IMG/VR virus record: IMGVR_UViG_3300033145_003233
Location: 372,001 to 436,000 of that record
Reading direction: 5' to 3' (one strand)
Length of the DNA stretch: 64,000 nucleotides
This document shows positions 3,160 to 59,970 of the stretch, in pieces. The notes beneath the pieces were generated by a model that did no database searches, was not told the origin of the DNA, and saw only the letters and a list, made by a program, of their open reading frames with translations. Each line of letters opens with the position of its first letter. Position 1 is the stretch's first letter. A program made the position numbers and the translations under genes.

Positions 3160-3216
3160 AAACTCATAATTATATAGGTAGAAAAACATAACAAATATAT
3201 TTAATAGGAGATAAAT

Positions 3217-3465: not shown

Positions 3466-3533
3466 ATTATGAAATTTCACAATCTTTTACGATATAATAA
3501 TGACAATATTATGTAATAAAATAGGAGTAAAAA

Positions 3534-18786: not shown

Positions 18787-19257
18787 CTAAGGTCTAAAAT
18801 CTAAAATCTCAAATCTATTTTCTATAAGAATGTCCTCTCTATCTTTAATCGTATAAGGGGCACATTCTCCATCAGTGAAATCCTCAGAAGTCAGATGGGC
18901 ATTGATAATATACCCCCCATTAAAACCATTTGATGATGCAGGACTCATAAACCAAGATTGTTTATACTCCCAAAAATCAACATGAACAGGAATCTCTATA
19001 TCATGTCTTTTTAAAAAAATTATATCCATAAGACGAGGTTGTGCCTTATATCTAATTTCCCATTCGTGATAACCAGCCTTTGCACATATTAATTCTAATT
19101 GATATATATCATACTTAAAAGGAGGGAAACGAGCAACCCCTTCCATTGTAGATATTACAACTGATAAACCATCTGGAAAGTCAGGATAATAAAGAGACCA
19201 TTCGTCCCATTTAAACGAACGCAAATATTTTAACGCCTTCTGTATTTCTGTTATCAT
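18787..19257 (-). CDS. Hypothetical protein with near-terminal RFEILDF tag
   Basis: Ends IENRFEILDFRP. Confidence 0.65.
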   Translation of the reverse strand: MITEIQKALKYLRSFKWDEWSLYYPDFPDGLSVVISTMEGVARFPPFKYDIYQLELICAKAGYHEWEIRYKAQPRLMDIIFLKRHDIEIPVHVDFWEYKQSWFMSPASSNGFNGGYIINAHLTSEDFTDGECAPYTIKDREDILIENRFEILDFRP

Positions 19258-19742
19258 AAATCCAATAATTCAAATCGACTACAATATTCTTCATAAGCAT
19301 CTTTAGTATCTTCAGCAGAAGCGAATAAAGAGATATTAGTATCTTCTAATTTCAACTCTATTCTCACATGATCATTAATGGTATTAGCAATAGCAAATAG
19401 ATGGTATGTCCTCCCATCAGGTCTAGCGGTTATATCTGCTTTAAATCTATATTCTTCCCTGCCTAATTGGAGATCGACATCTGTGGTATGTAATATTGAA
19501 GAAGCTAAAGACCCAGCATTTTTAAATATAAATTTAAACTTTTCTTTATTAGCAGAATCTATCTTGACATAATAAGTAATAAGAGGAGACAAAATAACTT
19601 TCCTATCTCCCCTCACAAAAGCAATTCTTTGAGAAAAATCTATATTAATATTTGCATATTTTTCTATAGATATTCTTTCCCCATTATCGCAAATAATAAA
19701 AAAATATTTTGGATCAGGAACGAGAACTGTCAACAAATTCAT
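19254..19742 (-). CDS. Hypothetical protein with C-terminal RFELLDL tag
   Basis: Ends SRFELLDL-stop. Confidence 0.65.
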   Translation of the reverse strand: MNLLTVLVPDPKYFFIICDNGERISIEKYANINIDFSQRIAFVRGDRKVILSPLITYYVKIDSANKEKFKFIFKNAGSLASSILHTTDVDLQLGREEYRFKADITARPDGRTYHLFAIANTINDHVRIELKLEDTNISLFASAEDTKDAYEEYCSRFELLDL

Positions 19743-30608: not shown

Positions 30609-31319
30609 TTACCAGTTATTGGCGAAATCATCCTTGCCGGAACTTTTAGAATCAACAGGAGCAGAAGCGGGAGTAGAAGCGGGAGCAGAAGCAGCAGTAG
30701 CGGCTACTGGCTCACTTGGTGTGCTGCTTTCCTTCTTTTGCCATTCTCCAAACAACTTTTCTTCTATTTGCTCTGGAGCATCCGTCTTGTATAATTTCTT
30801 CAGCTTGTCCTTATCCCCATCCAGAGATTCTTTAATAGCTTCTCTTTCCTCTTCGGTTAAAGGAGTATTTGCACAAAACACAACGTCATATTTAGTATTT
30901 AACCCCTTACCACTTACCGTAACGCTCCAATCGCTACCATCCTTACCACTTCCAGGATTTTTGCCCGTTATCTCTAAACTTTTTCCGATTGGGCGAAAAA
31001 CTGTCTGAGGAGCCTCTAAAATCTTAACTTTGCCGTCTGAACGATCAATAACATACGCAGCAAACCTCAAAGAAGGCTTTTTCAACTCAGAATGACGGTC
31101 CCTGACTGGACAAGTATCAGGAGAACCACAAATAGCAGTTCTCAATCTACCATCATGCTTATGAAAATACTTAAAAAATTTCACTGGAGAAAAGATTGGT
31201 CGGATACGATAGCTTTTTCCGCTTTCAAATCTGAGGTAATCATTTTTCTCCCCATCCCCACCACTACTAGTTGTTGGGATAGAATCCCATTGAACAAATT
31301 CCGTCATTTTTTCTGTCAT
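30609..31319 (-). CDS. Single-stranded DNA-binding protein (phage gp32-like)
   Basis: Y.IR, Zn-like C...CP.C/H, VKILE, G.GLNTKY.V, flexible tail ending DDFANNW; adjacent to recA. Confidence 0.7.
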   Translation of the reverse strand: MTEKMTEFVQWDSIPTTSSGGDGEKNDYLRFESGKSYRIRPIFSPVKFFKYFHKHDGRLRTAICGSPDTCPVRDRHSELKKPSLRFAAYVIDRSDGKVKILEAPQTVFRPIGKSLEITGKNPGSGKDGSDWSVTVSGKGLNTKYDVVFCANTPLTEEEREAIKESLDGDKDKLKKLYKTDAPEQIEEKLFGEWQKKESSTPSEPVAATAASAPASTPASAPVDSKSSGKDDFANNW

Positions 31320-31409: not shown

Positions 31410-32516
31410 TTAAATTTCGCCCCAACCAATTTCCCCGGTCTTAAGATGTTTAGGGGCCGAAGACGCCTCGGAAGGCAAATCATCGTAATCATCTAAATTA
31501 TCTATAATTTCTTTATCAACTACTTTATCTACTCTATCTACTTTATCTACTCTATCTACTTTATCTACAGAAGAATAAGTTGCACTAGACAATGCCCTCT
31601 TCTTCCTTCTATCTATCCTCTCAGCAGGAGGAAGCTCCATGCATATAGTAATTTTTCTACTAAAAGTATCATAAGCAGAAGCAAAATTTTTCTCAGCAGT
31701 AATAATAGAATTATGCAAACCTTCTAACCTACTTAGATATAACTCAACATCTCCCATATGTTCAAAAACAAGACCATCTTGCCTAAGACTAGGCTTAAGA
31801 TATTGCGCCCTCGCCAAAATTCCCCTCAATTCTTCTGTAAACCTTTTAAATTGATAGAATTGATTATTAACCCGAACCCCTATATACTTAACCCTCTCAC
31901 GATATTGTTGCACCTCTTCCATATATACAATTATTATAGTTGGGTCAAAAACCTCACTCGCCATATCTACCTTACCATCTGCCAACTCGTTTATCCATCT
32001 TGTGTATTCTATCTGACCTCCTGGTAAATGATTAAAAAGCTTTCTCTTATGTCGATAAAAACCATTATACATAGGAGCTGGACTTGTTAAAAACCACTGT
32101 ACCTTATCATCAATGATCATGGGTTTTTCTTCCTGCACTTCATTATCAAGAGCATCCGTACTCTCCACAACATTTTTAACAACAGCAACTGGAGGTATAA
32201 AATTATCCAACACATCTTCTTGCTCTTCTTGCTCTGTCTCCATTTCTATTTCTATTTCTACTCCATCATCTATTTCCACTACATTCTTTTCATCATCACC
32301 GATAGAGCAAACATCCTTAACAATATCATGAGGATTCTCTTCATCTCCTGAAATTTGACTTATATCTTCTCTAATATCTTCTGTAAGTTTCTGAAAAGAC
32401 TCTTTAGGAACAGCACCATGCCCATCATCTTCTACCTGAGAACCACTATCCTTACCTGATGGCAAGTCAAATATATCTTCAAAATATTCTATATCTATTT
32501 CTTTTTCTTTGGCCAT
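31410..32516 (-). CDS. Hypothetical protein (acidic N-terminus, helical core)
   Basis: Long ORF in replication block. Confidence 0.7.
   Translation of the reverse strand: MAKEKEIDIEYFEDIFDLPSGKDSGSQVEDDGHGAVPKESFQKLTEDIREDISQISGDEENPHDIVKDVCSIGDDEKNVVEIDDGVEIEIEMETEQEEQEDVLDNFIPPVAVVKNVVESTDALDNEVQEEKPMIIDDKVQWFLTSPAPMYNGFYRHKRKLFNHLPGGQIEYTRWINELADGKVDMASEVFDPTIIIVYMEEVQQYRERVKYIGVRVNNQFYQFKRFTEELRGILARAQYLKPSLRQDGLVFEHMGDVELYLSRLEGLHNSIITAEKNFASAYDTFSRKITICMELPPAERIDRRKKRALSSATYSSVDKVDRVDKVDRVDKVVDKEIIDNLDDYDDLPSEASSAPKHLKTGEIGWGEI
31523..31567. repeat. Five 9-bp tandem repeats (VDK/VDR)
   Basis: CT(T/C)TATCTA x5. Confidence 0.85.
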
Positions 32517-32528
32517 AATCCTCGCTCA

Positions 32529-32807
32529 TTAATCAAACATATCAATTTCATCTTTAGGCGTTTTACTGGTTTTTTTTACCTTAACGCTACCTATACATCT
32601 ATCGACCTTAAGGGTTGTAACCACCTCATTATATGTCTTTGTAAAATCTTCTATCAGAATATCTGTAATTTTATTAGTTTTTTCTTCCCTTTCTCCTGGA
32701 TTCTCCCATTCAATTTCTTCCTCTGCCTCCACTGTAATCGTAACTTGCTCAAATTGTTTCGTTTGTATTCCTCTTACTATACTCTTTTTAATTTTAGACT
32801 TACCCAT
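32529..32807 (-). CDS. Hypothetical protein
   Basis: ORF with SD. Confidence 0.65.
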   Translation of the reverse strand: MGKSKIKKSIVRGIQTKQFEQVTITVEAEEEIEWENPGEREEKTNKITDILIEDFTKTYNEVVTTLKVDRCIGSVKVKKTSKTPKDEIDMFD

Positions 32808-32818
32808 ATTATTTTCCC

Positions 32819-32980
32819 CTATTTAATTTGAACATTTATAAATTCAGCTTTTACATCAAAAACCATATTACATTCCCTACATTCGTGAACCTCAACAAAC
32901 TGACCATACTCGATACAACCAGAATTACCGATAAGCTCCAGCTCTCCACTCTCACACTGAGGACACTTTATCTTATTCAT
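32819..32980 (-). CDS. Small zinc-ribbon protein
   Basis: CPQC...CREC; probable start MNKIKC. Confidence 0.55.
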   Translation of the reverse strand: MNKIKCPQCESGELELIGNSGCIEYGQFVEVHECRECNMVFDVKAEFINVQIK

Positions 32981-33015
32981 AGGTTCCCCATATATAATAT
33001 AATGGCTATCACTTT

Positions 33016-34998
33016 TCAAAACAAATCCTCAAACATATCCACTGATTCTATTTTCTTTTTCGTTGTTTTTTTACGATCTCTCCTGATCATCAAAAAATCT
33101 TCCATCATTTCTTCCTTACGATCTATTTGCTTTTTCCCGAAAAATCCCGCTTCGATTAAAGCCTCCACCGCTCTAGTATCTACAATAGAAGAATCAGTTT
33201 TATTCACTATATCCCTCATGCCGCTATAAGGCTGATTGTCCTCTATATGCTTAGCCGTATTTGCTCTCATTCCCTTACATAACAAACTAGGTCTTATCTC
33301 TGTCTTTTTTATCCCGTTTTTTTCATCTTTTCTTTTTTCTATAACATATTGAACCTTCGATTTATTTATGTCTCTAGGAAGGAATTTGATATTCATTTTC
33401 CTTTTAAACTCTTTCTCAAAAGCATCTATTTTATCATATCTGTTTCCCTGAGAACCATTAATAGTCACATCTAACAAAGAGCAAATAAATTCATCAGGAT
33501 AATTAGCTTTCAAAAATGCCGTAGTATAAGAGTTGTATCCATAACAGGCACTATGAGCTAAATTAAATCCATACGAAGCAAATGGAGTAATAAATTTAGT
33601 CCAGTATTGTTGAGCTACATCCCTTGGAACCTTATTATCTATACATCCATCAACAAACTGTTTTTCAAACTTAGCCATAAGATATTCTTTTTTCTTTCCA
33701 ATGGCCTTAATCATTACATAACCATCTGTAATAGTAAAACCAGCTAAGTTGCTACATATCTGCATCACTTGTTCTTGAAAACACAAAACCCCATAAGTCT
33801 TTTTTAGATAAGACTTTACAAAAGGCTCAATTGACTTGTGGAAATAAGTTACTTCTTTTTCTCCGCTCTTCCTATCACAATATTCTGGAATACTATCCAT
33901 TGGACCAGGACGATAAAGAGCCAAACCAGCAACAATATCTTCAAAACTATCAACACCTATACTTCTCATGGTATGTTGCATACCATAATTCTCACATTGA
34001 AAAACTCCACCCAAATTACCATCTCTATATAATTTAAAAGCTCCCGCGTCATCAATAGGGAGATTCTCCAAATCAATTTCTATCCCCCAATAATCTTTTA
34101 TTTTTTCTACTGTTTTCTTAATTACCGTCAAAGTGGCAATAGCTAGAACATCAAATTTAATCAACCCCAAAACTTCTAAATCTTCATTAGGAAATTGGGT
34201 TGCCAGCACCCCCTTCTTAGCATTTCTTAATGGAGCTATTTCATTTAAAGGAATATTAGAAACAACCACGCCAGCCGCATGAAAACCGAAATTAGCGAAT
34301 GTGCCTTCGATCACCTCCATATACTCTTTTATACCTGTATCTTCGTACTTATCTATATAATGTCTAAAATCTGGACAATGCTCATAAGCATCATCGAAGG
34401 TTTTAATAAGATGACTATTCCCCCCTTCATCTTTAACTTTAAGCAAGCCATATTTCGGAAATGGTGATAAAATTTCAGAAGCCTTAGCAGCATTTTCGCT
34501 TATATAGGAATCTTTTCCTTTATGAAAAGCATCTGCGATATCTAGTGCTTTAACCACCCTAGTAACACATGATTTAAATTTTAATAAACCATGAGTACCT
34601 ATATTCCCAACATTCTCTCTGCCGTACTTATTTATAATATAACTATATACACCATCCCTATTCTCATAATCAAAATCAGTATCTATATCAGGCAAGCCAG
34701 CTCTAGCAAAAGCACGTCTGGTGGGGAGGAAATCTCCCGATGGCTTAGTTTTAGTCATACCAAGAAAATAGGCCGTCCAGCTATTAATATCATTCCTATT
34801 ACCAGCTTTTTTATCATGATTTTTCCATATATTGTAAAAAACTTCCAAATTATTCCTAGATTCCAGCCCCTCTGTAGTTTCCATTAATTCCATTTCTCGC
34901 TTTGCTTTTGAAAGAATTTTGGATAAATCAGAATGATCAGCGTATTTTCTCTCCACCGCCTCTATGATTTCTAACTTAATTACCCTCAATTCTGCCAT
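33016..34998 (-). CDS. dnaE: DNA polymerase III alpha subunit, C-terminal (catalytic) part
   Basis: PDIDTDF, HAAGVV, KFDVL, GVFQ.E, YRPGPM, FQEQVM, YGFN..HS. Confidence 0.93.
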   Translation of the reverse strand: MAELRVIKLEIIEAVERKYADHSDLSKILSKAKREMELMETTEGLESRNNLEVFYNIWKNHDKKAGNRNDINSWTAYFLGMTKTKPSGDFLPTRRAFARAGLPDIDTDFDYENRDGVYSYIINKYGRENVGNIGTHGLLKFKSCVTRVVKALDIADAFHKGKDSYISENAAKASEILSPFPKYGLLKVKDEGGNSHLIKTFDDAYEHCPDFRHYIDKYEDTGIKEYMEVIEGTFANFGFHAAGVVVSNIPLNEIAPLRNAKKGVLATQFPNEDLEVLGLIKFDVLAIATLTVIKKTVEKIKDYWGIEIDLENLPIDDAGAFKLYRDGNLGGVFQCENYGMQHTMRSIGVDSFEDIVAGLALYRPGPMDSIPEYCDRKSGEKEVTYFHKSIEPFVKSYLKKTYGVLCFQEQVMQICSNLAGFTITDGYVMIKAIGKKKEYLMAKFEKQFVDGCIDNKVPRDVAQQYWTKFITPFASYGFNLAHSACYGYNSYTTAFLKANYPDEFICSLLDVTINGSQGNRYDKIDAFEKEFKRKMNIKFLPRDINKSKVQYVIEKRKDEKNGIKKTEIRPSLLCKGMRANTAKHIEDNQPYSGMRDIVNKTDSSIVDTRAVEALIEAGFFGKKQIDRKEEMMEDFLMIRRDRKKTTKKKIESVDMFEDLF

Positions 34999-35022
34999 AT
35001 AAATCTCCCCTACGTCAGCTAT

Positions 35023-35051
35023 AGAATATCCGATTCCCTTTCACTTTTCAA
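35023..35051 (-). promoter_or_regulatory. sigma70-like promoter upstream of dnaE C-part
   Basis: TTGAAA AGTGAAAGGGAATCGGA TATTCT. Confidence 0.6.
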
Positions 35052-35264
35052 CTATAAATCTAAAATTTCGAATCTCAACCCAATATCTGAAACGATATCT
35101 CCATATCCCCTAATAGAAATAGGAGGTTGAAATCTTTTTTCTTTCAACTCGGATACGCTAATAGTGGGAGTAACAAACAATGGAGTATAAGGGACATATA
35201 TATATGCCTCCCCTAGAATATCTCCTCCTTTAAAACCAAGCCGGATTTGACTAGCTGTAGCCAA
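35052..35264 (-). CDS. Small protein resembling the C-terminal segment of T4 gp23-type major capsid protein, with RFEILDL tag
   Basis: LGFKG....AYIYVPYTPL..TP....FQP...R.YG versus gp23 VGYKG...AG.YY.PY..L.....FQP....RYG. Confidence 0.55.
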   Translation of the reverse strand: MATASQIRLGFKGGDILGEAYIYVPYTPLFVTPTISVSELKEKRFQPPISIRGYGDIVSDIGLRFEILDL

Positions 35265-35282
35265 TGTTTTACTCCCCCTCTT

Positions 35283-35513
35283 TTATAAATCCAAAATTTC
35301 AAACCTACTTTCTATAGGTTCCCATTCCCACATTATTGATGACCCATAAGGGACAATTATAGAACCAAGAGTTGTTCTTAACCTCATATATTCCAGCATC
35401 ACATCATGGGGAATCTCTCCCCTCCCATAATATTTTATCATCTCTTGAGTTCTCTCGTCCTCAAAAAATTCAACTTTCCCATTAATAGATATCTTAATAT
35501 CTGTCAACGCCAC
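35283..35513 (-). CDS. Hypothetical protein with RFEILDL tag
   Basis: Ends PIESRFEILDL-stop. Confidence 0.6.
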   Translation of the reverse strand: MALTDIKISINGKVEFFEDERTQEMIKYYGRGEIPHDVMLEYMRLRTTLGSIIVPYGSSIMWEWEPIESRFEILDL

Positions 35514-35826
35514 CTAAGTCATCCTCTAATTCATGCTCATGCGAATCATCATTTAAGTCAGAAAAATCCATAGCTCGAACAATATTCCCGATATGGTTAG
35601 CCAGTACAGGGTTTTCTGCCTGCATTTCCTCTATCGTATATCTATCTTTCATCCACCGATTCTCCATTTTTTTATCATCGAAAAAAACATACATACCCTT
35701 CCTAAATTCTGATTTATCGCCAAATTTAGTGTACACTAAGATTCCCCCATCCTTAATTTCTTCACGACTCACTATCTCTGTCACTCCTCTTGACCCATCA
35801 TCAAATTCATATCCTATATACAACAT
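35494..35826 (-). CDS. Hypothetical protein sharing C-terminal ELEDDLGGVDRY with DnaE N-part
   Basis: AGGAG SD; identical last 12 aa. Confidence 0.7.
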   Translation of the reverse strand: MLYIGYEFDDGSRGVTEIVSREEIKDGGILVYTKFGDKSEFRKGMYVFFDDKKMENRWMKDRYTIEEMQAENPVLANHIGNIVRAMDFSDLNDDSHEHELEDDLGGVDRY

Positions 35827-35858
35827 TCTATTCTCCTAACTTTTATTAATATTATCTT

Positions 35859-36896
35859 TCAATTTTTTATATGCTTCTTTAATTCCCAAATTGCTCTCTT
35901 ATATCTCGGCATAAATGTCTCATATTTACAATCCCCAGGTTTAACAGTCCTTAAAGTTATTCCAAGTTCTTTACATTTTTTACGCTTTCTCTTATCTCTA
36001 TCTTTTTGTTGCTTTAGCTTACTTTCTCCATGAATAGGTTTATAATGAAAGTTCCCACTAACCTCTACTGCATAATTTATATCAGGGAAATAAAAATCTA
36101 GCTCTAAAGGAGCAACAACTGTTCTATTATTTCTATCATATTTTACATTCAGTTTTTTAACCAATTTTTCAAACTGAGTCTCTACAAATGATTCTTTAAA
36201 TTTATACTTAGCGAAACATCTAATAGAACAAAAATGATGCTGATTCCTTTTAACATAAATAGGGGATTTAAAAACATTTTTATCGCATCCGTCACATTTT
36301 ACCCGAATTTTATTATTCTGAAATTCATTACAACACTTTTTTGAGCAAAATATATTATCCTTCCCCCTTAAAATGCTAGGAGATCTATATAAAATCTTAT
36401 CACAATTTTTACAATATACTCTCATTCTTTTATTATTATTGTCACTCCTGCATTTGATCGAGCAACAGTGAGTGAGGCTTCTTTTTCGTTCTGCTGAATT
36501 TTTATAAAAGTTTTTCCCACATACCTCACAGGCTACACTATTAATCCTTTGATAATAACTGGACTTACACTGCATATTACAAAAATATATATCTGTTTTA
36601 TTATCATCCCTCTCTCTCTTACATCTGTAAATAGATTTATGACAATTAGAACATCTTACTTCATTTTTTTCTATTTTATGCTTCGACAAACATATTTTAT
36701 TACAATAATGATGCTTAGACTTTTCTAAATATTTTTTTCCTCTCCTATTTTTTTTACCACAATAATCACAGTCTATTATTTTCGATCCCTTAATATCATT
36801 AGCACAATTCCTGGAACAACAATTTGTTTTACTTTTTAATATATGTGACAATTTTTTATAGAATTCTTTACCACAATAATCACAGTCTATAAGCAT
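35859..36896 (-). CDS. Homing endonuclease with Zn-finger (CxxC..FCS..C) repeats and Vsr/DUF559-like nuclease
   Basis: Six C..C.K.....(F/Y)C...C repeats; ELDFYFP..YAVE..G.FH. Confidence 0.75.
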   Translation of the reverse strand: MLIDCDYCGKEFYKKLSHILKSKTNCCSRNCANDIKGSKIIDCDYCGKKNRRGKKYLEKSKHHYCNKICLSKHKIEKNEVRCSNCHKSIYRCKRERDDNKTDIYFCNMQCKSSYYQRINSVACEVCGKNFYKNSAERKRSLTHCCSIKCRSDNNNKRMRVYCKNCDKILYRSPSILRGKDNIFCSKKCCNEFQNNKIRVKCDGCDKNVFKSPIYVKRNQHHFCSIRCFAKYKFKESFVETQFEKLVKKLNVKYDRNNRTVVAPLELDFYFPDINYAVEVSGNFHYKPIHGESKLKQQKDRDKRKRKKCKELGITLRTVKPGDCKYETFMPRYKRAIWELKKHIKN

Positions 36897-36978
36897 ATTT
36901 CTTATCTCCTATTGAAAAATAAATGTTCTCAACTATTATTAAATACAATTTAATAGGAGATAATCCCTCTTTTATTTT

Positions 36979-38391
36979 TTAATAACGGTCTACTCCCCCA
37001 AGATCATCTTCTAATTCTCTATCTACATCTCCTTTATCGGCGGCTTGTTGAATAAGGTTTTCCTCAAAGCCAAAATCTGACTCTTTTATAAACTTGAGCG
37101 AATCAAACCCAAGGAATCTCTCCCACAACAACCCATGTTCTATAGGGTCAATCCCATATGTAATCCCCAAACACCTCAACAAGACACTCGCATAACCCGA
37201 TCCACGCCCACAACCAACTAATATACCTCGTTCTTTGGCATCCTGGATATAATCTCGAACAATCAAAAAATAAGTCGAAAAATCATAATTATTACTTTCC
37301 TGTGCTACCAAAACATCTTTTAATTCCAGTTCTAATCTTTCAACATGTTTTTTACTATTATTCCATCCTACAGTCTTCATGCCTTCCCATGCAAGACGAC
37401 ACAAATATTCATAAGCATTTTTATATTCAGATGGAATTTCAAATTTGGGCAACCTCATTCCCCCAAATAAATTTTCTTCTATGTTCTTGGTATCTATTCG
37501 TTCAGCCAGCATAACAGAATTAGATAAACAATTAGAAGTGTTATTAAATATCTTCGCCATTTCTTCTGCACTTTTAAGATAGAACTCCATATGACTAAAA
37601 CTCAACCTGTCTGGATCTTTAACGCAACGTTGTTGTGACATGCACATTAAAACTTCTTGAGATTGGCCTTCTTTTCCAATTATATAGTGCCCATCATTCG
37701 TGCAAACTACAGGAATATTTAATTCAGAGGATAGTTTAAAAATTAAGGGGATAATCGCTTTCTCTTCCCTGATACCGTGGTACATTACTTCTAAAAAGAA
37801 ATTCTTATTAAATATCTCATTAAAAGTCCCGCATATCTTCTTTGCTCTATCATAGTTGCCATATACCAAATTGATATTAATAACACTTGATAAACAAGCA
37901 GAGCTACACATCACTCCCTCAGAATGCTTAGCCAGCAAATCTATATCAACTCTTGGATCAAAATAAAAACCATCAGTATATGACTTCTGAGACATACGAC
38001 ATATATTCTGATAACCCTTAAAATTCATAGCATATAAGTTGATATGCCTGTTTCCCCTTCTCCCATCAGGTTGGTTCTTTTTAGTTTTTTTAGTATCTTT
38101 TTTTTCATCGTATTGCCCTATATCCATTTTTCTAGAAAGATACATCTCACACCCAAGTATGGGTTTGATAGGAGCATAGGGAATACTATTGCCTTTTTTA
38201 TCTTTTGTGATACGACAATGTTGAAGGAATTTAATCCATCCCATAACAGACCCATGATCTGTTAGGGCAATAGCAGGAAACCCCATTTGCCTAGCTTTCA
38301 AAACAAGCTTATCAATTTTCGCGAGACCATCAAATTGGCTATACTCAGAATGTACGTGCCAATGAACAAAATCTTTATTTTCAAATTTCAT
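36979..38391 (-). CDS. dnaE: DNA polymerase III alpha subunit, N-terminal (PHP) part
   Basis: HVHSEYS..DG, TDHG, TNDGHY, YFLIV.D, GRGSG, LLWERFL. Confidence 0.93.
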   Translation of the reverse strand: MKFENKDFVHWHVHSEYSQFDGLAKIDKLVLKARQMGFPAIALTDHGSVMGWIKFLQHCRITKDKKGNSIPYAPIKPILGCEMYLSRKMDIGQYDEKKDTKKTKKNQPDGRRGNRHINLYAMNFKGYQNICRMSQKSYTDGFYFDPRVDIDLLAKHSEGVMCSSACLSSVININLVYGNYDRAKKICGTFNEIFNKNFFLEVMYHGIREEKAIIPLIFKLSSELNIPVVCTNDGHYIIGKEGQSQEVLMCMSQQRCVKDPDRLSFSHMEFYLKSAEEMAKIFNNTSNCLSNSVMLAERIDTKNIEENLFGGMRLPKFEIPSEYKNAYEYLCRLAWEGMKTVGWNNSKKHVERLELELKDVLVAQESNNYDFSTYFLIVRDYIQDAKERGILVGCGRGSGYASVLLRCLGITYGIDPIEHGLLWERFLGFDSLKFIKESDFGFEENLIQQAADKGDVDRELEDDLGGVDRY

Positions 38392-38394
38392 CTT

Positions 38395-38562
38395 TTACCA
38401 ATTCCAATTATCTAAACATTTAACGCAGAACGACTCAAATTCTTCCCTTGTAAGATGAGAATCAGGAGTGACTAATCTATGAATTGCCTTTCCTTCATCT
38501 AAATCCTTATAAGAAATGAATCTGCCGCAAAACTCACATCTTATTCGTTCTACTTTTTTCAT
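38395..38562 (-). CDS. Small Zn-finger protein
   Basis: CEFCGRFI...CVKC; ATGA overlap start. Confidence 0.6.
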   Translation of the reverse strand: MKKVERIRCEFCGRFISYKDLDEGKAIHRLVTPDSHLTREEFESFCVKCLDNWNW

Positions 38563-38918
38563 AAATCTAAAATATCCCACCTCGTTATATCATCATCTAT
38601 ATCTAATATTTTATGCTTTTTTGTGGTAGCATTAATCTCTACAACATGAGCAAAGGGGACTCTCTTCATTGTGGTCTTGACCCCCTTTTTGAAAGCTAAT
38701 AAATCAAGAGTTTGATCTTCGTATATTTTTAAAACTCTTACTTTCTCAAAATCTAAATTAAAAAAATCTTCCTGATGAGGAAGCCACTTCTTCATAGTCA
38801 TAGAAAATTCTATTCTATGATCATAAAGATTTTTAAAAACAATCTTGATAGTATCTATGTCTGACAACTCTTTATTGAAAATAGTTGTAACTATATGTTC
38901 TCGTCTAATAAATCTCAT
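38559..38918 (-). CDS. Hypothetical protein with RWDILDL tag
   Basis: Ends ITRWDILDL-stop. Confidence 0.7.
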   Translation of the reverse strand: MRFIRREHIVTTIFNKELSDIDTIKIVFKNLYDHRIEFSMTMKKWLPHQEDFFNLDFEKVRVLKIYEDQTLDLLAFKKGVKTTMKRVPFAHVVEINATTKKHKILDIDDDITRWDILDL

Positions 38919-38920
38919 CT

Positions 38921-39181
38921 TTAGCAATGCTTCGTAGGATCGTATCTCTCCCTATGACCATCTTTAAATCTAATGTACTTCGGATTTTGTTTTTTAACAT
39001 AATTAGAATCAGCTTCAAAACACTCTCTATCACCTCTCCATCCCCTAATATTCTTGGGAACTTTTATTCTTATACATTTTGTCCCATCAGGAGCATAAAA
39101 AGGTTTATTAATCTTTTTAAATGGTCTTATTTCCTCAAAAATTTCTCCCGTCTCTGGATGTTCAAATTCGTAAATTGGAAT
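38921..39181 (-). CDS. FmdB-like small protein with ATT start, not in ORF track
   Basis: GGGGAG SD then ATT CCA ATT TAC GAA TTT = (M)PIYEFEHPETGEIFEE; 86 codons open, fills an operon gap. Confidence 0.7.
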   Translation of the reverse strand: MPIYEFEHPETGEIFEEIRPFKKINKPFYAPDGTKCIRIKVPKNIRGWRGDRECFEADSNYVKKQNPKYIRFKDGHRERYDPTKHC

Positions 39182-39193
39182 TATTTTTCTCCC

Positions 39194-39724
39194 CTATAAA
39201 TCTAAAATATCAAACCTAGAAATAGATTCCCCTTTAGATTTCTTTTTCCTTTTCTTTTTTACTTTTTTCTTTGATTTTTTCGCTGCCTCAGTCGGAGAAT
39301 CTGGAAAAACCGTGTTCCACTCTATCCCACTAACATGACCCTCATTATATGGTTCACTCAATGTCGAAGAAGATATAGTGAAGCCCGAAGAAAAATGGAC
39401 AGGATTATTAAAATGAATTTGAGAGTTAGCAGTCATATTGATATAATTACCAGAGCTATCCTCGACATATGGCTCAATATGGATAGGATTCTCAGACATT
39501 TGCAATTCACCCGTTTGCACAGTAAGATTAATAGGCAACTGCTTTTCTATTACAAAATTTTTATTTTCAGAAAGATTAAATTGTAAAAATTCTAAAAAAG
39601 TTATACCGGAAACACAACTTTGCATATCATCATGCAAAGTTAAATATTCTGCACGAATATCTAAATAATCTTGTTCTTCATTAAAAACAACTGAGAGATT
39701 TTCTATATTATGCGAATAACTCAT
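39194..39724 (-). CDS. Hypothetical protein with RFDILDL tag
   Basis: Ends ISRFDILDL-stop. Confidence 0.65.
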   Translation of the reverse strand: MSYSHNIENLSVVFNEEQDYLDIRAEYLTLHDDMQSCVSGITFLEFLQFNLSENKNFVIEKQLPINLTVQTGELQMSENPIHIEPYVEDSSGNYINMTANSQIHFNNPVHFSSGFTISSSTLSEPYNEGHVSGIEWNTVFPDSPTEAAKKSKKKVKKKRKKKSKGESISRFDILDL

Positions 39725-39725: not shown

Positions 39726-39974
39726 TTACAAATCCAATATTTCTAACCTAGATAGACCTTCTTTTCTATCTGGGGAACTTTTAATTTTCACCATAAAATC
39801 TTCGTATTGACTCAAAGATTGCTCCATCTCATATATCATATCAAACAACACGGTATTAGGTTGATCTAATATTTGATCTACCTCCTCAATAGTTAATCCA
39901 TGAAATCTGGCGAAAGATGAGACACCTAATAGGAAGAATATCTCACTAAAACTGCGACCGTGCTGATCACCCAT
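39726..39974 (-). CDS. Hypothetical protein with RLEILDL tag
   Basis: Ends LSRLEILDL-stop. Confidence 0.65.
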   Translation of the reverse strand: MGDQHGRSFSEIFFLLGVSSFARFHGLTIEEVDQILDQPNTVLFDMIYEMEQSLSQYEDFMVKIKSSPDRKEGLSRLEILDL

Positions 39975-40765
39975 TATAAATCTAAGAGGTCAAATCTATC
40001 ACAGTTGTCCTCTTCTCCCCTATAATCCGTCCCTTCCTCTAACTTATCGGAATATATCCCCATAATTTTCCAACCCTTCTCCATAGCTAACTCCTTGGCC
40101 CTCGTAAAAATCCTTCTCCCATATTTTCTTTTAAATTCTTTGTATTTAAATTTGCTATATGCATTATAATGCCTAGTCTCTATTTTTTCCATTGCCAGAA
40201 TATTTCTTGTCGCTTCATCATAAGATATATTCATCAAATGCGGCAAAAAATTATACTTAATTATATGTTCATCTGAATGACCATTACTCCTTAAATATCC
40301 TATTGACCACCCATATGCAAATTCCTCCCTAATCTCACTACTAACAGAACGATGCCCCAAAGCAACATAACAATAATGACACAATTCATGAACAATAACT
40401 TCATCTTTACTTACCTTTGCCTCTATATGATAAGTTCTATTGACAGGAGTTGAGGAACGATGAGCACCACACAACACCACTATCTTCGTAACAGGGTCAT
40501 AGAAACCCTCCACTCCATGATATCCCATTCTATCCATGTCCCTGGCAGCAACTTTGAAAACCACTACATCTTTTACACTGGCCCCTGGAAATAAAGCATC
40601 TACATAATCATAAGCCTTTTGAAAATCTGTGTAATATATTTTCTTGAGAGCTATTTTTCTAATCTTTTCGATATTTTTTTGAGTTAGCTCAAACTGCTTC
40701 TTCGATTCTTGTCTGAAACCATGATCATACAAATAAGAATGAGATAAACTAGTAGCTCTAAACAT
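39974..40765 (-). CDS. Putative zinc metallopeptidase with RFDLLDL tag
   Basis: GFY...IVL, HELCH (HExxH), downstream EEFA. Confidence 0.65.
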   Translation of the reverse strand: MFRATSLSHSYLYDHGFRQESKKQFELTQKNIEKIRKIALKKIYYTDFQKAYDYVDALFPGASVKDVVVFKVAARDMDRMGYHGVEGFYDPVTKIVVLCGAHRSSTPVNRTYHIEAKVSKDEVIVHELCHYCYVALGHRSVSSEIREEFAYGWSIGYLRSNGHSDEHIIKYNFLPHLMNISYDEATRNILAMEKIETRHYNAYSKFKYKEFKRKYGRRIFTRAKELAMEKGWKIMGIYSDKLEEGTDYRGEEDNCDRFDLLDL

Positions 40766-52126: not shown

Positions 52127-52900
52127 CTAACAATCTGATTTAACCCATGATTTTTGTCTTACTTCTATCCCAAAAAATTGTGGCCAATATTTTCTACACA
52201 TAGTAAAATGCTCTCCTACAGTTTTATCCTGATGTATTGTAGTAACACTATTATCATGCTTTCTATAATAAACTAATGGCTGAAGGATATTATCAAATTT
52301 ATATCCATACGAAATAGCCTTGCCCCATAAATAGAAATCTGGCACTAATCTCCACTCTGCCGAATACCCCCCTATTTTTTCAAAAGCTCGTCTCCTAAAC
52401 ATACTAGCAGGATCTATTATAGGATTTTTTACTTTTAAAAATTCTGCTCTTATCTCTTTGTGTGTCGGTGGAGGATAGTCCATAATCTCTAGCTCTTCAC
52501 CATTCTCATCTATTTTAATGGCCCAGGAACTAACACAAAATACATCTTGATGATCTTCAAGAAAAGCAACTTCCTTTTCTAATCTCTCTGGAAAACTAAT
52601 ATCATCTGCATCATGTATAGCTAAATACTTTCCCTGAGCATATCTAATAGCTTCATTCCTGCCTGCTCCACAACCTATATTTTTCTTTTCTCCCAATTCC
52701 TTAATCGCGATAAAACGATTCAAAATCCCCCCTTTACTATATGCTTTTAATATTTCAAAAGTATTGTCAGTAGAGGCATCATCATAAACAATGAGTTCAA
52801 AATCTTTAAATGTTTGTGAAAAAATAGAATCTAATGCTTCCTCTATAAACTCCTCACAATTATAAACAGTCATAATTATACTAACTTTTGGCCTTTTCAT
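52127..52900 (-). CDS. Glycosyltransferase family 2
   Basis: VSIIM.VYN, DDASTD, RN, DADD. Confidence 0.92.
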   Translation of the reverse strand: MKRPKVSIIMTVYNCEEFIEEALDSIFSQTFKDFELIVYDDASTDNTFEILKAYSKGGILNRFIAIKELGEKKNIGCGAGRNEAIRYAQGKYLAIHDADDISFPERLEKEVAFLEDHQDVFCVSSWAIKIDENGEELEIMDYPPPTHKEIRAEFLKVKNPIIDPASMFRRRAFEKIGGYSAEWRLVPDFYLWGKAISYGYKFDNILQPLVYYRKHDNSVTTIHQDKTVGEHFTMCRKYWPQFFGIEVRQKSWVKSDC

Positions 52901-53121
52901 AAATCTAATATCTCCCATCTGCTATTAATCGGATCATGAAACCCTTCTAAGCAATCTTCTCTCCATTCAAAAACACCAACCCTTTTTAAAATATATTTAT
53001 CTTTATATATCTTCCTTACCACAGTGGTTCTATCATTTAATTGGTTTATACACGCTTGTGCCGCTGAATTACAAATCAAATCTGTTCTTATCCTTACCTT
53101 GTCCCCTACTTTATACTTCAC
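52897..53121 (-). CDS. Small KOW/SH3-like protein with RWEILDL tag
   Basis: MKYKVGDKVRIR; ends INSRWEILDL-stop. Confidence 0.7.
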   Translation of the reverse strand: MKYKVGDKVRIRTDLICNSAAQACINQLNDRTTVVRKIYKDKYILKRVGVFEWREDCLEGFHDPINSRWEILDL

Positions 53122-55866: not shown

Positions 55867-56037
55867 ATGGCCAAAAAAGAAAAAACAGATAAGATAATCA
55901 ATTTTGCAATTAAACAATCTCTCTATGATAAATTTAAAAAGATATGCGATCAACGCTATAAGAGTCTGAGCGAGCAGATTAGAGAATTGATAGTGGAAAA
56001 AGTAAATAGGGAAGATAACATTAAAGAATCTAAGTAG
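55867..56037 (+). CDS. RHH-like regulator, not in ORF track
   Basis: AAGGAG SD; INFAIKQSLYDKFKKIC..RYKSLSEQIRELI, similar to the 10581 and 13635 RHHs. Confidence 0.7.
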   Translation: MAKKEKTDKIINFAIKQSLYDKFKKICDQRYKSLSEQIRELIVEKVNREDNIKESK

Positions 56038-56088
56038 ATTGATCGATACCTAATTATAGATCAAAGTTTAATTAAAAAGGAAAAAATA

Positions 56089-56487
56089 ATGCATGAAATT
56101 ATAATAGCAGTCTTGCTAACGATAATCTCCGGATTAACTGTTAAAATATATGGAGACTATGCCTCTAATGCTAAAATAGCAAAAATACAAAAGAAAAAGA
56201 CAAAAAAATACTACAAAGAATTAGAAGACGATATCCCCTGTGCCTTAAAATATATAAAAAAATGCGTACAAGAAAAGAATAGTGTAAGTTGCATATTTGT
56301 CCCTACCACTTTTGGTAAATTTGAGGATAAAGAATATAATAACCAAAAAATTACAAAAAATCCCCTAATTGAAGAAGAGATTATAGAATCATTACAAAGT
56401 AAACAATTTATTTCTATGTCCCTTAATTCTGATGAAACTTATATATATAAAGAAGAGTTTATAGATTTATTAAAAAAGAATTTATAA
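56089..56487 (+). CDS. Membrane-anchored hypothetical protein
   Basis: N-terminal hydrophobic segment. Confidence 0.6.
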   Translation: MHEIIIAVLLTIISGLTVKIYGDYASNAKIAKIQKKKTKKYYKELEDDIPCALKYIKKCVQEKNSVSCIFVPTTFGKFEDKEYNNQKITKNPLIEEEIIESLQSKQFISMSLNSDETYIYKEEFIDLLKKNL

Positions 56488-56538
56488 TCACTTTCTTCTT
56501 AAAAATATAAATATTAGAATAACACTAAGGAAAATAAA

Positions 56539-57327
56539 ATACAAAAGTACAAATATATTTGCCCGATATGTGAAGAAACTGGTAATGAATCCAAAAGAGC
56601 GCATGTTCTCCCTGAAAGTTTAGGATTTACTAAAATTGTCGAAGTAGTTAAAAAAAAAGAATGCAAATGTGATCATATTATGGGGAGTACTTGCGAAAAA
56701 GCTTTAAGAGATTGTTATATCTATAATTATCATAATTACAAAGGAGATAAAAAAACTAATACAGACGATCTATCTGAAGTAAATAAATTAGACTGGAAAA
56801 TAGATACTAAAAAAGATAAAAAAATGAATGCAAAATTTATAGAAAGAAATGGAAACATCGAAATAAAACCATGCCCCTCTGGAGGTTGGGACAAATTTAA
56901 ACAACAATCAAAACACCTATTAAAGATAACCCAGGTAAACACAGTGAAAGCAAAAGCAGAAATAGAAAAAGATGCATATAAAATTTATTTTTGCCTTATT
57001 CATTCTTTGCTTTTAATGAATCTTGACAAAAAAATTCTTGATGATAAAATTAGGAATAATCTCAGAGAGACATTAAAAAGGAACTGTAAGAATAAATTTA
57101 ATGATTTTAGAAATAGACAGGCCACTTGGGAATATCAAAAAGAAAAAGAAATACAACATATTAGTTTTTGTAATCAAATAGGAACAGGGAGGATCATATA
57201 TGCTAAAACCAAAATGATAGGATTTGGGTGTGGAATCCAATTAAATAATTATTGTTATGCCTATACGGTTGATGTCCTAAATTGGACCGTAGAAAAAATA
57301 AAGAAAAAAATCAGAAGACGTTTCTAA
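56539..57327 (+). CDS. HNH-like endonuclease domain protein, start uncertain (ATA at 56539 or ATG at 56680)
   Basis: In-frame upstream CPIC...HVLPESLG...CKC precedes the annotated ATG. Confidence 0.5.
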   Translation: MQKYKYICPICEETGNESKRAHVLPESLGFTKIVEVVKKKECKCDHIMGSTCEKALRDCYIYNYHNYKGDKKTNTDDLSEVNKLDWKIDTKKDKKMNAKFIERNGNIEIKPCPSGGWDKFKQQSKHLLKITQVNTVKAKAEIEKDAYKIYFCLIHSLLLMNLDKKILDDKIRNNLRETLKRNCKNKFNDFRNRQATWEYQKEKEIQHISFCNQIGTGRIIYAKTKMIGFGCGIQLNNYCYAYTVDVLNWTVEKIKKKIRRRF

Positions 57328-57426
57328 TCTAATTAATCTATTATAACGGCACATCTACTCAATTGTAAATTTTTATTTTCCAGACAATTGTTTTTTTGAT
57401 ATAATAGAATAAAAAGGAGATTAAAA

Positions 57427-57933
57427 ATGAAAAGAATGTTAGTAGTTATAATTATCTTATTAATAATTATTGCTGGTTTGTTAATAGACAACTTTTACCC
57501 TGATATCAGAATAGAGATACAAGATGGAATTTATGCCTCCAAAACGTCCAATAAAATTATAAAAGAAGCTAATGAATGTATATCTCTGTGTAATAAATGC
57601 GGAGAAAAATTAACTCGTTGTGGCCCCATCAGTATATATGCTGCTCTTGATTATACAATTCGAGGTTCTTTTTGTGCTATCTGTAATAAATGTCTATCTG
57701 GTATTAAAGATATTAACTTAGAGAATATTATAAATTCGGGAATAGGAAAAATTTTAACTTATCCTTCTAATGTATATATACCTGATAATAAATTCTGGAA
57801 CATATGGGGAGAAGTTTATATAAGATCAAGAGATGCAAATAAAAATAAAGAATTATTGGTAGAAATAGGCTTTTATGATAAATTCGATGAAAAAGCTCTT
57901 CGCAATTTTAATATTTTCACTGGACAAATCTAA
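57427..57933 (+). CDS. Membrane-anchored/secreted hypothetical protein
   Basis: AGGAG SD, N-terminal TM helix, CxxC pairs. Confidence 0.65.
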   Translation: MKRMLVVIIILLIIIAGLLIDNFYPDIRIEIQDGIYASKTSNKIIKEANECISLCNKCGEKLTRCGPISIYAALDYTIRGSFCAICNKCLSGIKDINLENIINSGIGKILTYPSNVYIPDNKFWNIWGEVYIRSRDANKNKELLVEIGFYDKFDEKALRNFNIFTGQI

Positions 57934-58008
57934 TTCATTTTCAAATGTTTTTTTTAATTACTTAATAATCAAGATATATCTACTCCATCCTAAATTTTTA
58001 TTTCCTTC

Positions 58009-58036
58009 TTGAAAGTGAAAATATAAATGTTAAAAT
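58009..58036 (+). promoter_or_regulatory. sigma70-like promoter
   Basis: TTGAAA GTGAAAATATAAATGT TAAAAT. Confidence 0.55.
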
Positions 58037-58361
58037 GGCATCTATGTTTAAAATCGAAGAAGAAATTCAACTAACAAAAAATGGAGATTTTTTACAAAGT
58101 TCTAAAGAACTTAGAGAATACTACACCCCTAGAACTATAGGCTATCATAAATATTGCGATTCAAATCGATCAAAAGATTCTTTCATGTATTTACACAGAA
58201 CATCAAAACAAAAAAATACCATCTTTTGTAAAAAATGTAATTTTAGAATTGAGATACCCCTAAAAGTAAATAATTTCAAAAAAATAAAAAAATATTTTGA
58301 AAATAGATTTGATGATCCAATTGATAGAATCCAAGACAGATCAGAAATTTTAGATTTATGA
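58035..58361 (+). CDS. Hypothetical protein with RSEILDL tag
   Basis: Ends IQDRSEILDL-stop. Confidence 0.65.
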   Translation: MASMFKIEEEIQLTKNGDFLQSSKELREYYTPRTIGYHKYCDSNRSKDSFMYLHRTSKQKNTIFCKKCNFRIEIPLKVNNFKKIKKYFENRFDDPIDRIQDRSEILDL

Positions 58362-58864
58362 TGAAACTCGAAAAAGATTTTATACAATGTTGTGCAGAAT
58401 TTTTATTCAAAATAGCTGATTTTGAAGACTATGATGATAAACACTATATTAGTATGGGCCACGGGGATGGAGAACACCTTTGTTTTAAGTGTTGTGAAAA
58501 AGAAGTCGAAAAAATTAATAAAGAATTGCCCGAGAATGAAGAAAAAGCTTTTGTAGATGGAGGATGGAATGGTGCGGGTATTGACGGAAATGATGAAGGA
58601 CCTGATTCCTGTGATATATGCTATAAAAAATTAGATTATTCTTTATCTGAAAGTGGAGTTATACAAGAATGTAAATTTTTCTTAGAGGAAGACTTAGTAG
58701 AAATAACTCCGAATAATGCTGCTGAACTATATTATCTTTTCGACAATAGTGATAATTATGATTTTCAAGGTAATGACTTAAATAAATTGACAAAATTAGC
58801 CAATAAAATTTGGCGTCTTTTAGATCAAACAATTGAGAGTAGGTTTGAGATTTTAGATTTATGA
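58358..58864 (+). CDS. Hypothetical Cys-containing protein with RFEILDL tag
   Basis: Ends IESRFEILDL-stop. Confidence 0.7.
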   Translation: MMKLEKDFIQCCAEFLFKIADFEDYDDKHYISMGHGDGEHLCFKCCEKEVEKINKELPENEEKAFVDGGWNGAGIDGNDEGPDSCDICYKKLDYSLSESGVIQECKFFLEEDLVEITPNNAAELYYLFDNSDNYDFQGNDLNKLTKLANKIWRLLDQTIESRFEILDL

Positions 58865-59181
58865 GATATAAAGTAGGAGATAAAGTAAGAATAAAGACGC
58901 AAGAACAAATGAGGGAAGAAGGACATGTGGGAAGACATAGTAATAAGGTGATAGTCTGTAATTATAGATATTTTTTTGATTCGATAGAATCTGATGTCAA
59001 TAAATATTCTACAGATAGAATATTAACAATTGCAAGTGTAGAAAACGATGAGGATGGGGATTATTATTACACAATGAAAGGGATGTGTTGGAGATGGAAC
59101 GATCCTATGATTGAAGGTATAGTAAAAAATTGTGAGAAGCCCATATCTATTAAAAGCAGATTTGATATTTTAGATTTATGA
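58861..59181 (+). CDS. Small KOW/SH3-like protein with RFDILDL tag
   Basis: MRYKVGDKVRIK (paralog of 52897-53121); ends IKSRFDILDL-stop. Confidence 0.7.
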   Translation: MRYKVGDKVRIKTQEQMREEGHVGRHSNKVIVCNYRYFFDSIESDVNKYSTDRILTIASVENDEDGDYYYTMKGMCWRWNDPMIEGIVKNCEKPISIKSRFDILDL

Positions 59182-59184
59182 ATA

Positions 59185-59931: not shown

Positions 59932-59970
59932 ATTAGTTAGTGGCAGAAGTTATTGTGATAATAGGGGTGA

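Follow-up and report, generated by a model that had tools for sequence, protein, structure and literature searches.

In textbook accounts, the catalytic core of a replicative DNA polymerase is a single polypeptide chain. A few phage genes are said to deviate from such continuity: nrdA of Aeromonas phage Aeh1, with mobE, and the family B polymerase gene gp43 of phage 25 and of Aeh1 reportedly exist in pieces. Intein-less genes in pieces that result from free-standing homing endonucleases have also been described from environmental sequences, including an SbcD-like locus from Global Ocean Sampling (GOS) (PMC2677866), alongside fractured genes whose halves bear split inteins and enclose a Vsr-like or GIY-YIG endonuclease, three DnaE loci included (Dassa et al. 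2009, PMC2677866). A minimal Pol III alpha of group 2.2 jumbo phages is split into an NTP-binding and an Mg/DNA-binding protein (Iyer et al. 2021, PMC7824862). The locus analysed here lies in a stretch of 64,000 nucleotides (the window), i.e., bases 372001–436000 of IMG/VR record IMGVR_UViG_3300033145_003233, a single contig of 547,943 bp with 33.6% GC, for which CheckV gives a phage genome completeness of 100%. It encodes a DnaE-like polymerase in two separate open reading frames (ORFs). Taken as a whole, the evidence makes it likely that the two polypeptides come together, without covalent linkage, as one DnaE-like enzyme whose active site is composite; the split is old and is found in hundreds of relatives, and the endonuclease gene located between the halves is a later passenger.

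Both halves are encoded on the minus strand, which carries the genes around the locus. The N-half (36979..38391, 470 aa) comprises a PHP domain, the N-terminal subdomain of the palm with the GRGS motif, a degenerate catalytic strand, an acidic linker and a C-terminal motif, and the C-half (33016..34998, 660 aa) comprises a leader, the catalytic strand PDIDTDF, the thumb, the rest of the palm, the fingers and a helix-hairpin-helix (HhH) domain. The ORFs are 1980 bp apart, with four ORFs (ORF3 to ORF6; 345, 110, 76 and 70 aa) in between. Because the long ORFs are open under translation table 11, no alternative genetic code is required. Neither a family A or B polymerase (no match to PF00136) nor a further copy of PF07733 was found in the genome, and the split DnaE is the phage's only recognisable replicative polymerase. 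Like canonical DnaE (M. tuberculosis DnaE1, Thermus Pol III alpha; PMC5636811), it has a PHP metal site of nine residues, a GS motif, an Asp triad, fingers and an HhH domain; unlike canonical DnaE, it consists of two chains, with ~125 extra residues between the ERFL motif of the N-half and PDID of the C-half. The single-polypeptide catalytic core by which canonical DnaE is defined is thus not found here, and the two-ORF state is the norm in the clade.

Compared with the intein-less genes in pieces, the locus likewise presents an essential replication enzyme as two adjacent ORFs with mobile-element genes between them, no intein, extra residues at the break and an RNA hairpin over the ribosome-binding site of the endonuclease, and function would presumably be restored by non-covalent assembly. 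Unlike those systems, the split is ancient, clade-wide and independent of the endonuclease, the cargo is variable and the break lies inside the catalytic palm; where genes in pieces gain few residues, the halves have here a reciprocally degenerated overlap of ~100 aa, and the N-half ends in a conserved peptide motif. With the fractured dnaE loci are shared the host gene, the layout of N-part, free-standing endonuclease and C-part, a hairpin upstream of the endonuclease (in this genome only) and possibly the Vsr-like or DUF559 kind of endonuclease. In contrast to split-intein dnaE, the cyanobacterial DnaE intein included, intein halves are absent, so that trans-splicing is not expected, and the break falls between ERFL and the catalytic strand and not at known intein sites. 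As in group 2.2, a C-family palm is divided at its dNTP- and metal-binding subdomains in very large phages, with non-covalent reconstitution presumed; the group 2.2 version, however, has no PHP, fingers or HhH, its genes lie far apart and it occurs together with a family B polymerase, whereas the present one is full-size with PHP, has neighbouring halves, is the only polymerase found and carries in each half a degenerate copy of the partner's piece. In the literature, no description was found of a full-size PHP-bearing DnaE that is split between ERFL and the catalytic strand and has reciprocal degenerate duplicates and fused relatives. An unrelated cultured phage, Rossellomorea phage phiT1 (PV767480.1, 9714–12996, corresponding to 1942–5224 of our extracted locus L004), also has DnaE annotated as two coding sequences, of 573 aa and 469 aa, which are separated by a 49-aa ORF; the break is at another position.

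The PHP domain (37777..38364, minus strand; N-half aa 10–205) was identified by PF02811 (E = 7.9e-43). All nine PHP metal ligands (H12, H14, D21, H46, E82, H116, C166, D233, H235) are invariant across 64 N-halves and equal the set of 5 His, 3 Asp/Glu and 1 Cys of the active M. tuberculosis PHP exonuclease (PMC5636811), with D21 paired with D23 and D233 with D226 in the alignment to M. tuberculosis DnaE1. The intact palm N-subdomain (37102..37410, minus strand; aa 328–430) matches positions 1–97 of the 260 of PF07733 (DNA_pol3_alpha). Its GRGS motif (G395-R396-G397-S398, window 37198–37209) is invariant in the 64 N-halves, as are R425, F426 and L427 of ERFL (aa 424–427), after which a 43-aa tail follows. 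In HMMER alignments, the N-half aligned with residues 3–440 of M. tuberculosis DnaE1, and it covers the NCBIfam DnaE models from position 1 to about 396–401. Both halves are 33–41% identical to bacterial DnaE.

The C-half aligned with residues 379–910 of M. tuberculosis DnaE1 and spans the NCBIfam DnaE model from positions 372–398 to about 918. Positions 69–260 of PF07733 were matched at aa 72–286, followed by a finger domain (PF17657, 3e-47) and HHH_6 (PF14579, 3.5e-11); an OB fold and a tau-binding C-terminal domain were not detected by Pfam. The catalytic strand PDIDTDF (34672..34692, minus strand; aa 103–109) provides D104 and D106, and the third catalytic Asp, D283, is encoded at window 34150–34152; the three residues are invariant across 36 C-halves, and the segments around them align with PDIDTDF and KMDFLGL of Taq. 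The initial annotation had described a dnaE gene split without an intein, with an acidic tail of about 43 aa after ERFL, about 100 aa (102 by our count) ahead of PDIDTDF and four genes in between, all of which was borne out, and both halves could be aligned to solved DnaE over the ranges given above, with the Taq strands matched. Its statement that ERFL and PDID usually stand about 10 residues apart also holds, since the distance is at most 10 in 119 of the best 150 representatives at 50% identity. The start codon of the C-half (M1) is invariant and is preceded by a GGGGAG ribosome-binding site. A promoter of its own, placed by the initial annotation at 35023–35051, was not confirmed: in a sigma-70 scan the site matches 9 of 12 consensus positions, and the region holds 21 such matches against 28.1 ± 7.0 in shuffled sequences, i.e., no more than chance.

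The halves overlap at the junction. The Pfam matches to PF07733 share profile positions 69–97, and in the NCBIfam DnaE models the halves either abut exactly at ~394 or overlap by ~29 positions, depending on the model. The C-half leader (34693..34998, minus strand; aa 1–102), which would represent the palm N-subdomain copied in degenerate form at the structural level, no longer has the GS motif (GNRND, Asn replacing Ser) and shows 18 invariant positions of its own (among them E35, G44, N69, N72, S73, W74, T82, P86, F90, L91, R94, A96–R99). Profile–profile comparison of the leader with the N-half palm using hhalign gave E = 0.13, with 17 aligned columns in the register that had been expected by eye, and was not counted as evidence; when 27 leaders alone were searched against Pfam, PF07733 was matched in one, namely the one that included PDIDTDF. 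Because this sequence-level signal is weak, the leader was modelled by itself (AlphaFold2, aa 1–102, 27-row alignment, predicted local distance difference test (pLDDT) 78.7) and compared against 48,161 solved chains. The top seven chains were all C-family polymerases, with Z from 8.7 down to 5.5, and the best unrelated chain reached Z 4.7. The best match was M. tuberculosis DnaE1 (Z 8.7, root-mean-square deviation 2.5 Å, 93 of 102 residues, chain 315–424); the leader also aligned to E. coli alpha 286–405, and PolC and Taq matched too. Foldseek ranked DnaE first, with a template-modelling score of about 0.5 and non-significant E-values (5.9–9.5).

When the whole C-half was modelled, its alignment to DnaE began at aa 106–114 and left the leader outside. 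In that model, the leader may occupy a non-canonical position relative to the core, or its orientation may be left unfixed by the low confidence of aa 92–113; as far as prediction goes, the puzzle is settled by the separate leader model. The segment aa 92–113, which contains the catalytic strand, is the only one with pLDDT <50 when the C-half is modelled alone. By this structural modelling, the entire 102-aa leader is a predicted copy of the palm N-subdomain that the N-half holds intact.

Reciprocally, the N-half continues beyond its palm N-subdomain with an extension (36982..37101, minus strand; aa 431–470) that consists of a pseudo-catalytic strand (FIKESDFGF), what is left of a helix, and an acidic linker that varies. 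Two residues of the pseudo-strand, D439 and G441, are invariant in the 64 N-halves. HMMER pairs FIKESDFGF with MPDIDIDF of M. tuberculosis DnaE1, and LIQQAADKGDVDR with MVRYAADKWGHDR, reaching residue 440. By this sequence alignment, the N-half tail repeats, in degenerate form, the catalytic strand together with the helix that follows it, and the duplicated unit corresponds roughly to E. coli alpha 286–425. The duplicated junction segment proposed by the initial annotation is therefore supported by the match of the leader model to the C-family palm N-subdomain (Z 8.7), and copies are indeed present in both halves; its extent has to be revised, since the duplication is larger than described and takes in the whole palm N-subdomain (~100 aa) in the C-half and the catalytic strand and helix in the N-half.

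Nine split relatives of 56–78% identity on contigs of up to 453 kb were compared, among them IMG/VR loci L001 (75%), L003 (73%) and L002 (56%), and contigs L005, L006, L007, L011 and L012. The break point is identical in all nine, and leader and pseudo-strand are retained. Common to them is a synteny of DnaB, a DnaG zinc ribbon and methyltransferases, then N-half, cargo and C-half, followed by two conserved genes, a gp32-like single-stranded DNA-binding protein (SSB), a RecA-like protein and Toprim. The gap between the halves measures 268–2936 bp, and its cargo varies: about nine small ORFs in L001, a ClpP-like protease in L002, one small ORF each in L003, L005 and L012, three small ORFs in L006, a dCMP deaminase in L007 and eight small ORFs in L011. 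The endonuclease of the window was found in none of these relatives. A length-restricted search gave 618 stand-alone N-half homologues at E ≤ 1e-10, on contigs of up to 472 kb, the best 120 of which are 53–79% identical and nearly all 433–494 aa long; searching with the leader gave 51 C-halves. The split is ancient and common to a large clade of uncultivated huge phages. Since leader and pseudo-strand have diverged past sequence recognition and yet retain many positions that are invariant across lineages of 53–78% identity, the event appears to be old and under selection. Mobile and accessory genes have repeatedly settled between the halves.

Other architectures were retrieved by exhaustive search of 1.84 billion representatives. 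Both copies are kept in a single chain in P0182 (1098 aa), P0188 (1117 aa), P0190 (1082 aa) and P0185 (1426 aa, with an intein between GRG and S), and the distance from ERFL to PDID in these fused forms is 110–125 residues. Short contiguous forms (P0184, P0196) have 16–17 residues between an N-half-type ERFL[GA]F and a C-half-type Rx[FY]ARPG[FW]PD. P0188 and P0184 have the same gene context as the split members and are open under table 11. A phylogeny built with FastTree from the N-half region separates the clade from canonical DnaE with a support of 0.994, and split, short and fused forms intermingle: P0188 groups with an N-half (0.968), P0182/P0185 with an N-half (0.96), and P0184 is nested (0.845–0.907). 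Because these forms are interspersed in the clade, fission and fusion have occurred more than once, P0184 at least is a secondary deletion and the duplication is clade-wide. As both copies are kept in split relatives without an endonuclease and in fused relatives alike, the endonuclease is taken to be incidental, with neither duplication nor split requiring it. Fused, split and deleted forms in one clade offer a natural series for gene fission by duplication and complementary degeneration. Inteins are borne by many members of the clade, on the N-half side by P0177, P0181, P0183 and P0185 and on the C-half side by P0126, P0129, P0138, P0140, P0149, P0163 and P0168; a recurrent insertion site lies inside the GS motif, between GRG and S, where the intein ends in ...VHN ahead of the Ser. 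The window copy carries no intein.

In the mechanism that we propose, the N-half would contribute proofreading through its PHP domain and, with GRGS, the half of the Pol-beta-like palm that binds dNTPs, and the C-half would contribute the Asp triad that binds metal (D104, D106, D283) along with thumb, fingers and HhH. A composite active site is suggested by invariance on both sides, of GRGS in the N-half and of the three catalytic Asp in the C-half. Each half would retain a degenerate and strongly conserved copy of what its partner provides; the two copies would be the two ends of an internal partial duplication that some relatives keep in one chain, the degenerate duplicates would act as conserved structural or interface elements, and the gap between them would have turned into a landing site for variable cargo genes. 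A complex prediction of the N-half with C-half residues 1–500 scored 0.87, against 0.01 for the best of 3 controls; the 0.87 mark is attained by 58 of 80 solved complexes and by 2 of 110 mismatched pairs, counts that apply here only roughly because our own alignments were used. By the residue list, the confident interface comprises aa 388–401 and 410–442 of the N-half and aa 38–71 and 91–110 of the C-half. Conservation, the lone polymerase, the complex model and the disordered catalytic strand of the isolated C-half together favour a heterodimer with a composite active site, and the non-covalent two-subunit polymerase suggested by the initial annotation is, given the division of catalytic motifs between the halves and the predicted complex, still the best reading. 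Huge environmental phages of a large clade would then have the active site of the one polymerase found in them spread over two proteins, dNTP-binding GS on one and metal-binding Asp on the other, without splicing machinery, and the engineering of C-family polymerases could draw on a naturally occurring split site and, possibly, on docking elements.

Several points weigh against this proposal. The complex score could stem from solved single-chain DnaE structures that the model had memorised. Joining of the halves at the RNA or protein level is excluded only via the absence of known signatures. The duplication in the leader is drawn from predicted structure and from hidden Markov model (HMM) alignments that extend outward from the catalytic strand, because the leader is not significantly similar at the sequence level, as the hhalign and PF07733 results above indicate. 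The tree does not order duplication and split, the states being interspersed and some nodes weak (0.35–0.55). The C-terminal motif of the N-half, finally, is missing in the split relatives L002, L003 and L005 and lies outside the confident interface of the complex model, which covered C-half residues 1–500.

The gene that follows directly on the N-half stop codon, ORF3 (35859..36896, minus strand; 345 aa), encodes a free-standing putative homing endonuclease with repeated Cys-rich zinc-finger modules (zf-FCS) and a C-terminal nuclease domain at about aa 231–318. It matched PHROG families named 'HNH endonuclease' and 'homing endonuclease' (phrog_559, 1.4e-14; phrog_1271; phrog_9084, 7e-8) and did not match the Vsr family of Pfam; the C-terminal domain weakly resembles PD-(D/E)xK nucleases (PvuRts1I-like_N, E = 0.012), and by language-model features the nearest sequences are phage DUF559 clusters (0.93). 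Its segment LDFYFPD...AVEVSGNFHY fits, by eye, the D...E.xG..H pattern of PMC2677866. The weak resemblance of the C-terminal domain is compatible with membership in the Vsr-like family described there, and the 'Vsr-like' of the initial annotation is a candidate assignment. ORF3 is present in a single copy in the genome. Its 5' untranslated region forms a predicted RNA hairpin (36902..36963, minus strand; inverted repeat of 15 nt, 93% complementary; −16.2 kcal/mol, z −1.85), the 3' arm of which includes the AGGAG ribosome-binding site; hairpins over the ribosome-binding site have been described for gene-fracturing endonucleases (PMC2677866).

Spelled out, the invasion proposed by the initial annotation would be a recent event in this lineage, in which the homing endonuclease fractured an intact dnaE and the junction was duplicated during repair. 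The position of ORF3 with its hairpin directly after the N-half stop fits such an event, as does the likeness to intein-less fractured genes (Aeh1 nrdA, phage 25 gp43 and the SbcD-like locus of PMC2677866), and a synonymous-only copy of the N-half tail at the end of ORF4 (see below) could be a flank left by homing or co-conversion between diverged alleles. By the criterion for a recent invasion, close relatives without the endonuclease would carry an uninterrupted gene; instead, the relatives of 56–78% identity are split identically, all those examined lack ORF3 and yet share break residue, leader and pseudo-strand, ORF3 is single-copy, and fused relatives already carry the duplication. Leader and pseudo-strand are, moreover, highly diverged yet invariant at many positions across lineages, which argues for an old event under selection. 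The sequence of events claimed by the initial annotation, partial duplication after endonuclease invasion, is thus contradicted and very unlikely to be correct, and ORF3 is best regarded as a further passenger in a gap that has existed for long. Practically no weight is given to an artefact or pseudogene, be it misassembly, frameshift or a decaying polymerase gene. Nothing beyond the unusual architecture speaks for such an origin; a second assembly is 99.3% identical with equal gene order, hundreds of stand-alone homologous halves have intact catalytic residues and the split DnaE is the sole polymerase found in the genome; it is the conservation that refutes this explanation. Fragments annotated as 'PHP domain-containing protein' and 'DNA polymerase III alpha' on such contigs should not be taken for pseudogenes.

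Two further explanations concern the way in which the halves function. In one, the C-half is self-sufficient, using its leader as palm N-subdomain, and the N-half is a separate PHP exonuclease outside catalysis, in keeping with the leader being a complete, confidently modelled and strongly conserved copy of that subdomain within the C-half and with the nine PHP metal ligands being intact in the N-half. The leader has, however, lost the GS motif (GNRND), whereas the N-half keeps GRGS, ERFL and the whole palm N-subdomain invariant, none of which a mere exonuclease would need; the two genes are always paired in constant order and fused forms are known; and the predicted interface includes N-half aa 388–401 and C-half aa 102–110, the C-half catalytic strand being disordered when modelled alone. 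Functional independence is therefore considered unlikely. The other would have the halves joined covalently, by a cryptic or atypical split intein made of N-half tail and C-half leader, by RNA trans-splicing or by ribosomal bypass. Taken together, tail (69 aa from S402) and leader (72 aa to N72) would indeed be about as large as a mini-intein, the residues S402, N72 and S73 are all invariant, a joint of A401 to S73 would yield a canonical GRGS...AY.LG.T..P...PDID, and inteins are frequent in the gene family (P0177 and P0185 between GRG and S; PF14890 in some C-halves). Yet no intein or Hint model of Pfam or NCBIfam was matched in the halves at E ≤ 0.1, and both the TxxH block and the penultimate His are missing. 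The putative N-intein reads as clear DnaE (LGITYGIDP...LLWERFL), more canonical than the C-half copy, the leader model has the DnaE palm fold and not a Hint fold, S402 and S73 are accounted for by the conserved Ser of the canonical motif, and the N-half tail ranges in length from 0 to about 60 aa. At the RNA level, no Rfam family, intron or other, was found at E ≤ 10 in 32500–39000, and none at the gathering score in the window as a whole; the gap of 0.27–2.9 kb holds genes, and the C-half begins with an invariant M1 after GGGGAG. In agreement with the initial annotation, which saw no intein, covalent joining is rated extremely unlikely. A cryptic split intein with the boundaries S402...Y470 and M1...N72 was considered as a specific candidate and dismissed (no Hint or intein match, tail consisting of DnaE sequence, leader with the palm fold).

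The C-terminal motif of the N-half, ELEDDLGGVDRY (36982..37017, minus strand; aa 459–470), which the initial annotation does not mention, follows the acidic linker, which varies in length, and has the clade consensus [DE]R[ED]x-E-[DE]-D-[LMFQ]-G-G-[VT]-D-R-Y (core EDDLGGVDRY). It ends about 75% of the 120 closest N-halves, the others stopping straight after SDFGF; G466 and R469 are invariant in the 64 N-halves, and the motif is absent from the fused forms. We infer that EDDLGGVDRY on its acidic linker serves as a docking motif for the C-half or for another replisome protein. ORF4 (35494..35826, minus strand; 110 aa), an orphan protein, is the only other ORF in the genome with an ending of the N-half type. 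Its last 12 aa (window 35497–35532) are identical to the N-half motif, with ~10 nucleotide differences, all synonymous, and its last 21 aa matched the N-half tail profile with E = 1.2e-8; the only homologue of ORF4 that was found is 100% identical and comes from the near-identical contig L013. One explanation is that the motif is a modular docking signal for which both N-half and ORF4 are selected; another is that the 3' end of ORF4 stems from the tail of a diverged N-half allele and was displaced in a recombination or homing event. A bolder and, in our estimate, rather doubtful proposal is that degenerate duplicates and motif form a dedicated assembly system, in which the catalytic centre is built in trans and regulated or parasitised, ORF4-type cargo, with its motif maintained by purifying selection, competes for the docking site and the gap is a selected 'safe harbour'; ORF4-like cargo would then modulate polymerase assembly or replisome coupling. 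Acidic-aromatic tails are also seen at the end of the C-half (...SVDMFEDLF, 33016–33050), of a 92-aa ORF (...DEIDMFD, 32529–32560) and of the SSB (...KDDFANNW, 30609–30640), with similar endings in relatives (DIFG, SLFD, EFDFD); their likeness to clamp-binding or SSB-type tails was judged by eye.

ORF5 (35283..35513, minus strand; 76 aa) and ORF6 (35052..35264, minus strand; 70 aa) have no family match and end in SRFEILDL and LRFEILDL, respectively. Genome-wide, 25 small ORFs (58–263 aa) end in [SN]R[FWYL][ED]-I/L-L-D-L before the stop codon, where about 0.1 are expected by chance, and there are another ten or so with the ending ILDI and three with IMDL. In the window, ORFs with the ILDL tail are located on the minus strand at 35052–35264, 35283–35513, 38559–38927, 39194–39724, 39726–39974, 39974–40765, 19254–19742 and 52897–53121 and on the plus strand at 58035–58361, 58358–58864 and 58861–59181, with more clusters elsewhere in the genome. 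Among close relatives, the tail was seen in 14 ORFs of L001, 3 of L012 and 1 of L003; it is absent from more distant loci. Because the residues vary in the manner of proteins, the tail is regarded as a C-terminal peptide signal common to otherwise unrelated small proteins; its possible roles include those of a degron or of a signal for docking or targeting. No paper on the motifs RFEILDL and GGVDRY was found in the literature.

In INPHARED, no near relative of the phage was found, the top match being <36% identical. The second assembly is an independent NCBI contig (L013; GCA_054384775.1, JBQSEL010000362.1) that corresponds to window 33256–35806, is 99.3% identical over 2551 bp and has the identical order ORF4-ORF5-ORF6-C-half. 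It was deposited within a metagenome-assembled genome (MAG) of 'Candidatus Asgardarchaeia archaeon', and another N-half, MCD6435642.1, carries the label Clostridiales bacterium; both contigs are probably phage DNA binned into cellular MAGs. Among the split relatives, the C-half of L007 (10494–12946) is itself divided into two ORFs of 601 aa and 216 aa, the latter with HHH_6, next to an N-half of 660 aa, which may reflect further fragmentation or a frameshift. An HNH-type endonuclease-like ORF stands directly upstream of the N-half in L003 (9202–10014), and in L006 an OrfB_IS605 / Cas12f-like TnpB gene (2544–3779) lies a few kb upstream of the polymerase. Within the window, 56001–60000 is the sole stretch with positive GC skew and lower GC (0.27–0.29); it overlaps plus-strand small ORFs, three of them with the ILDL tail, and looks like an inverted gene block.

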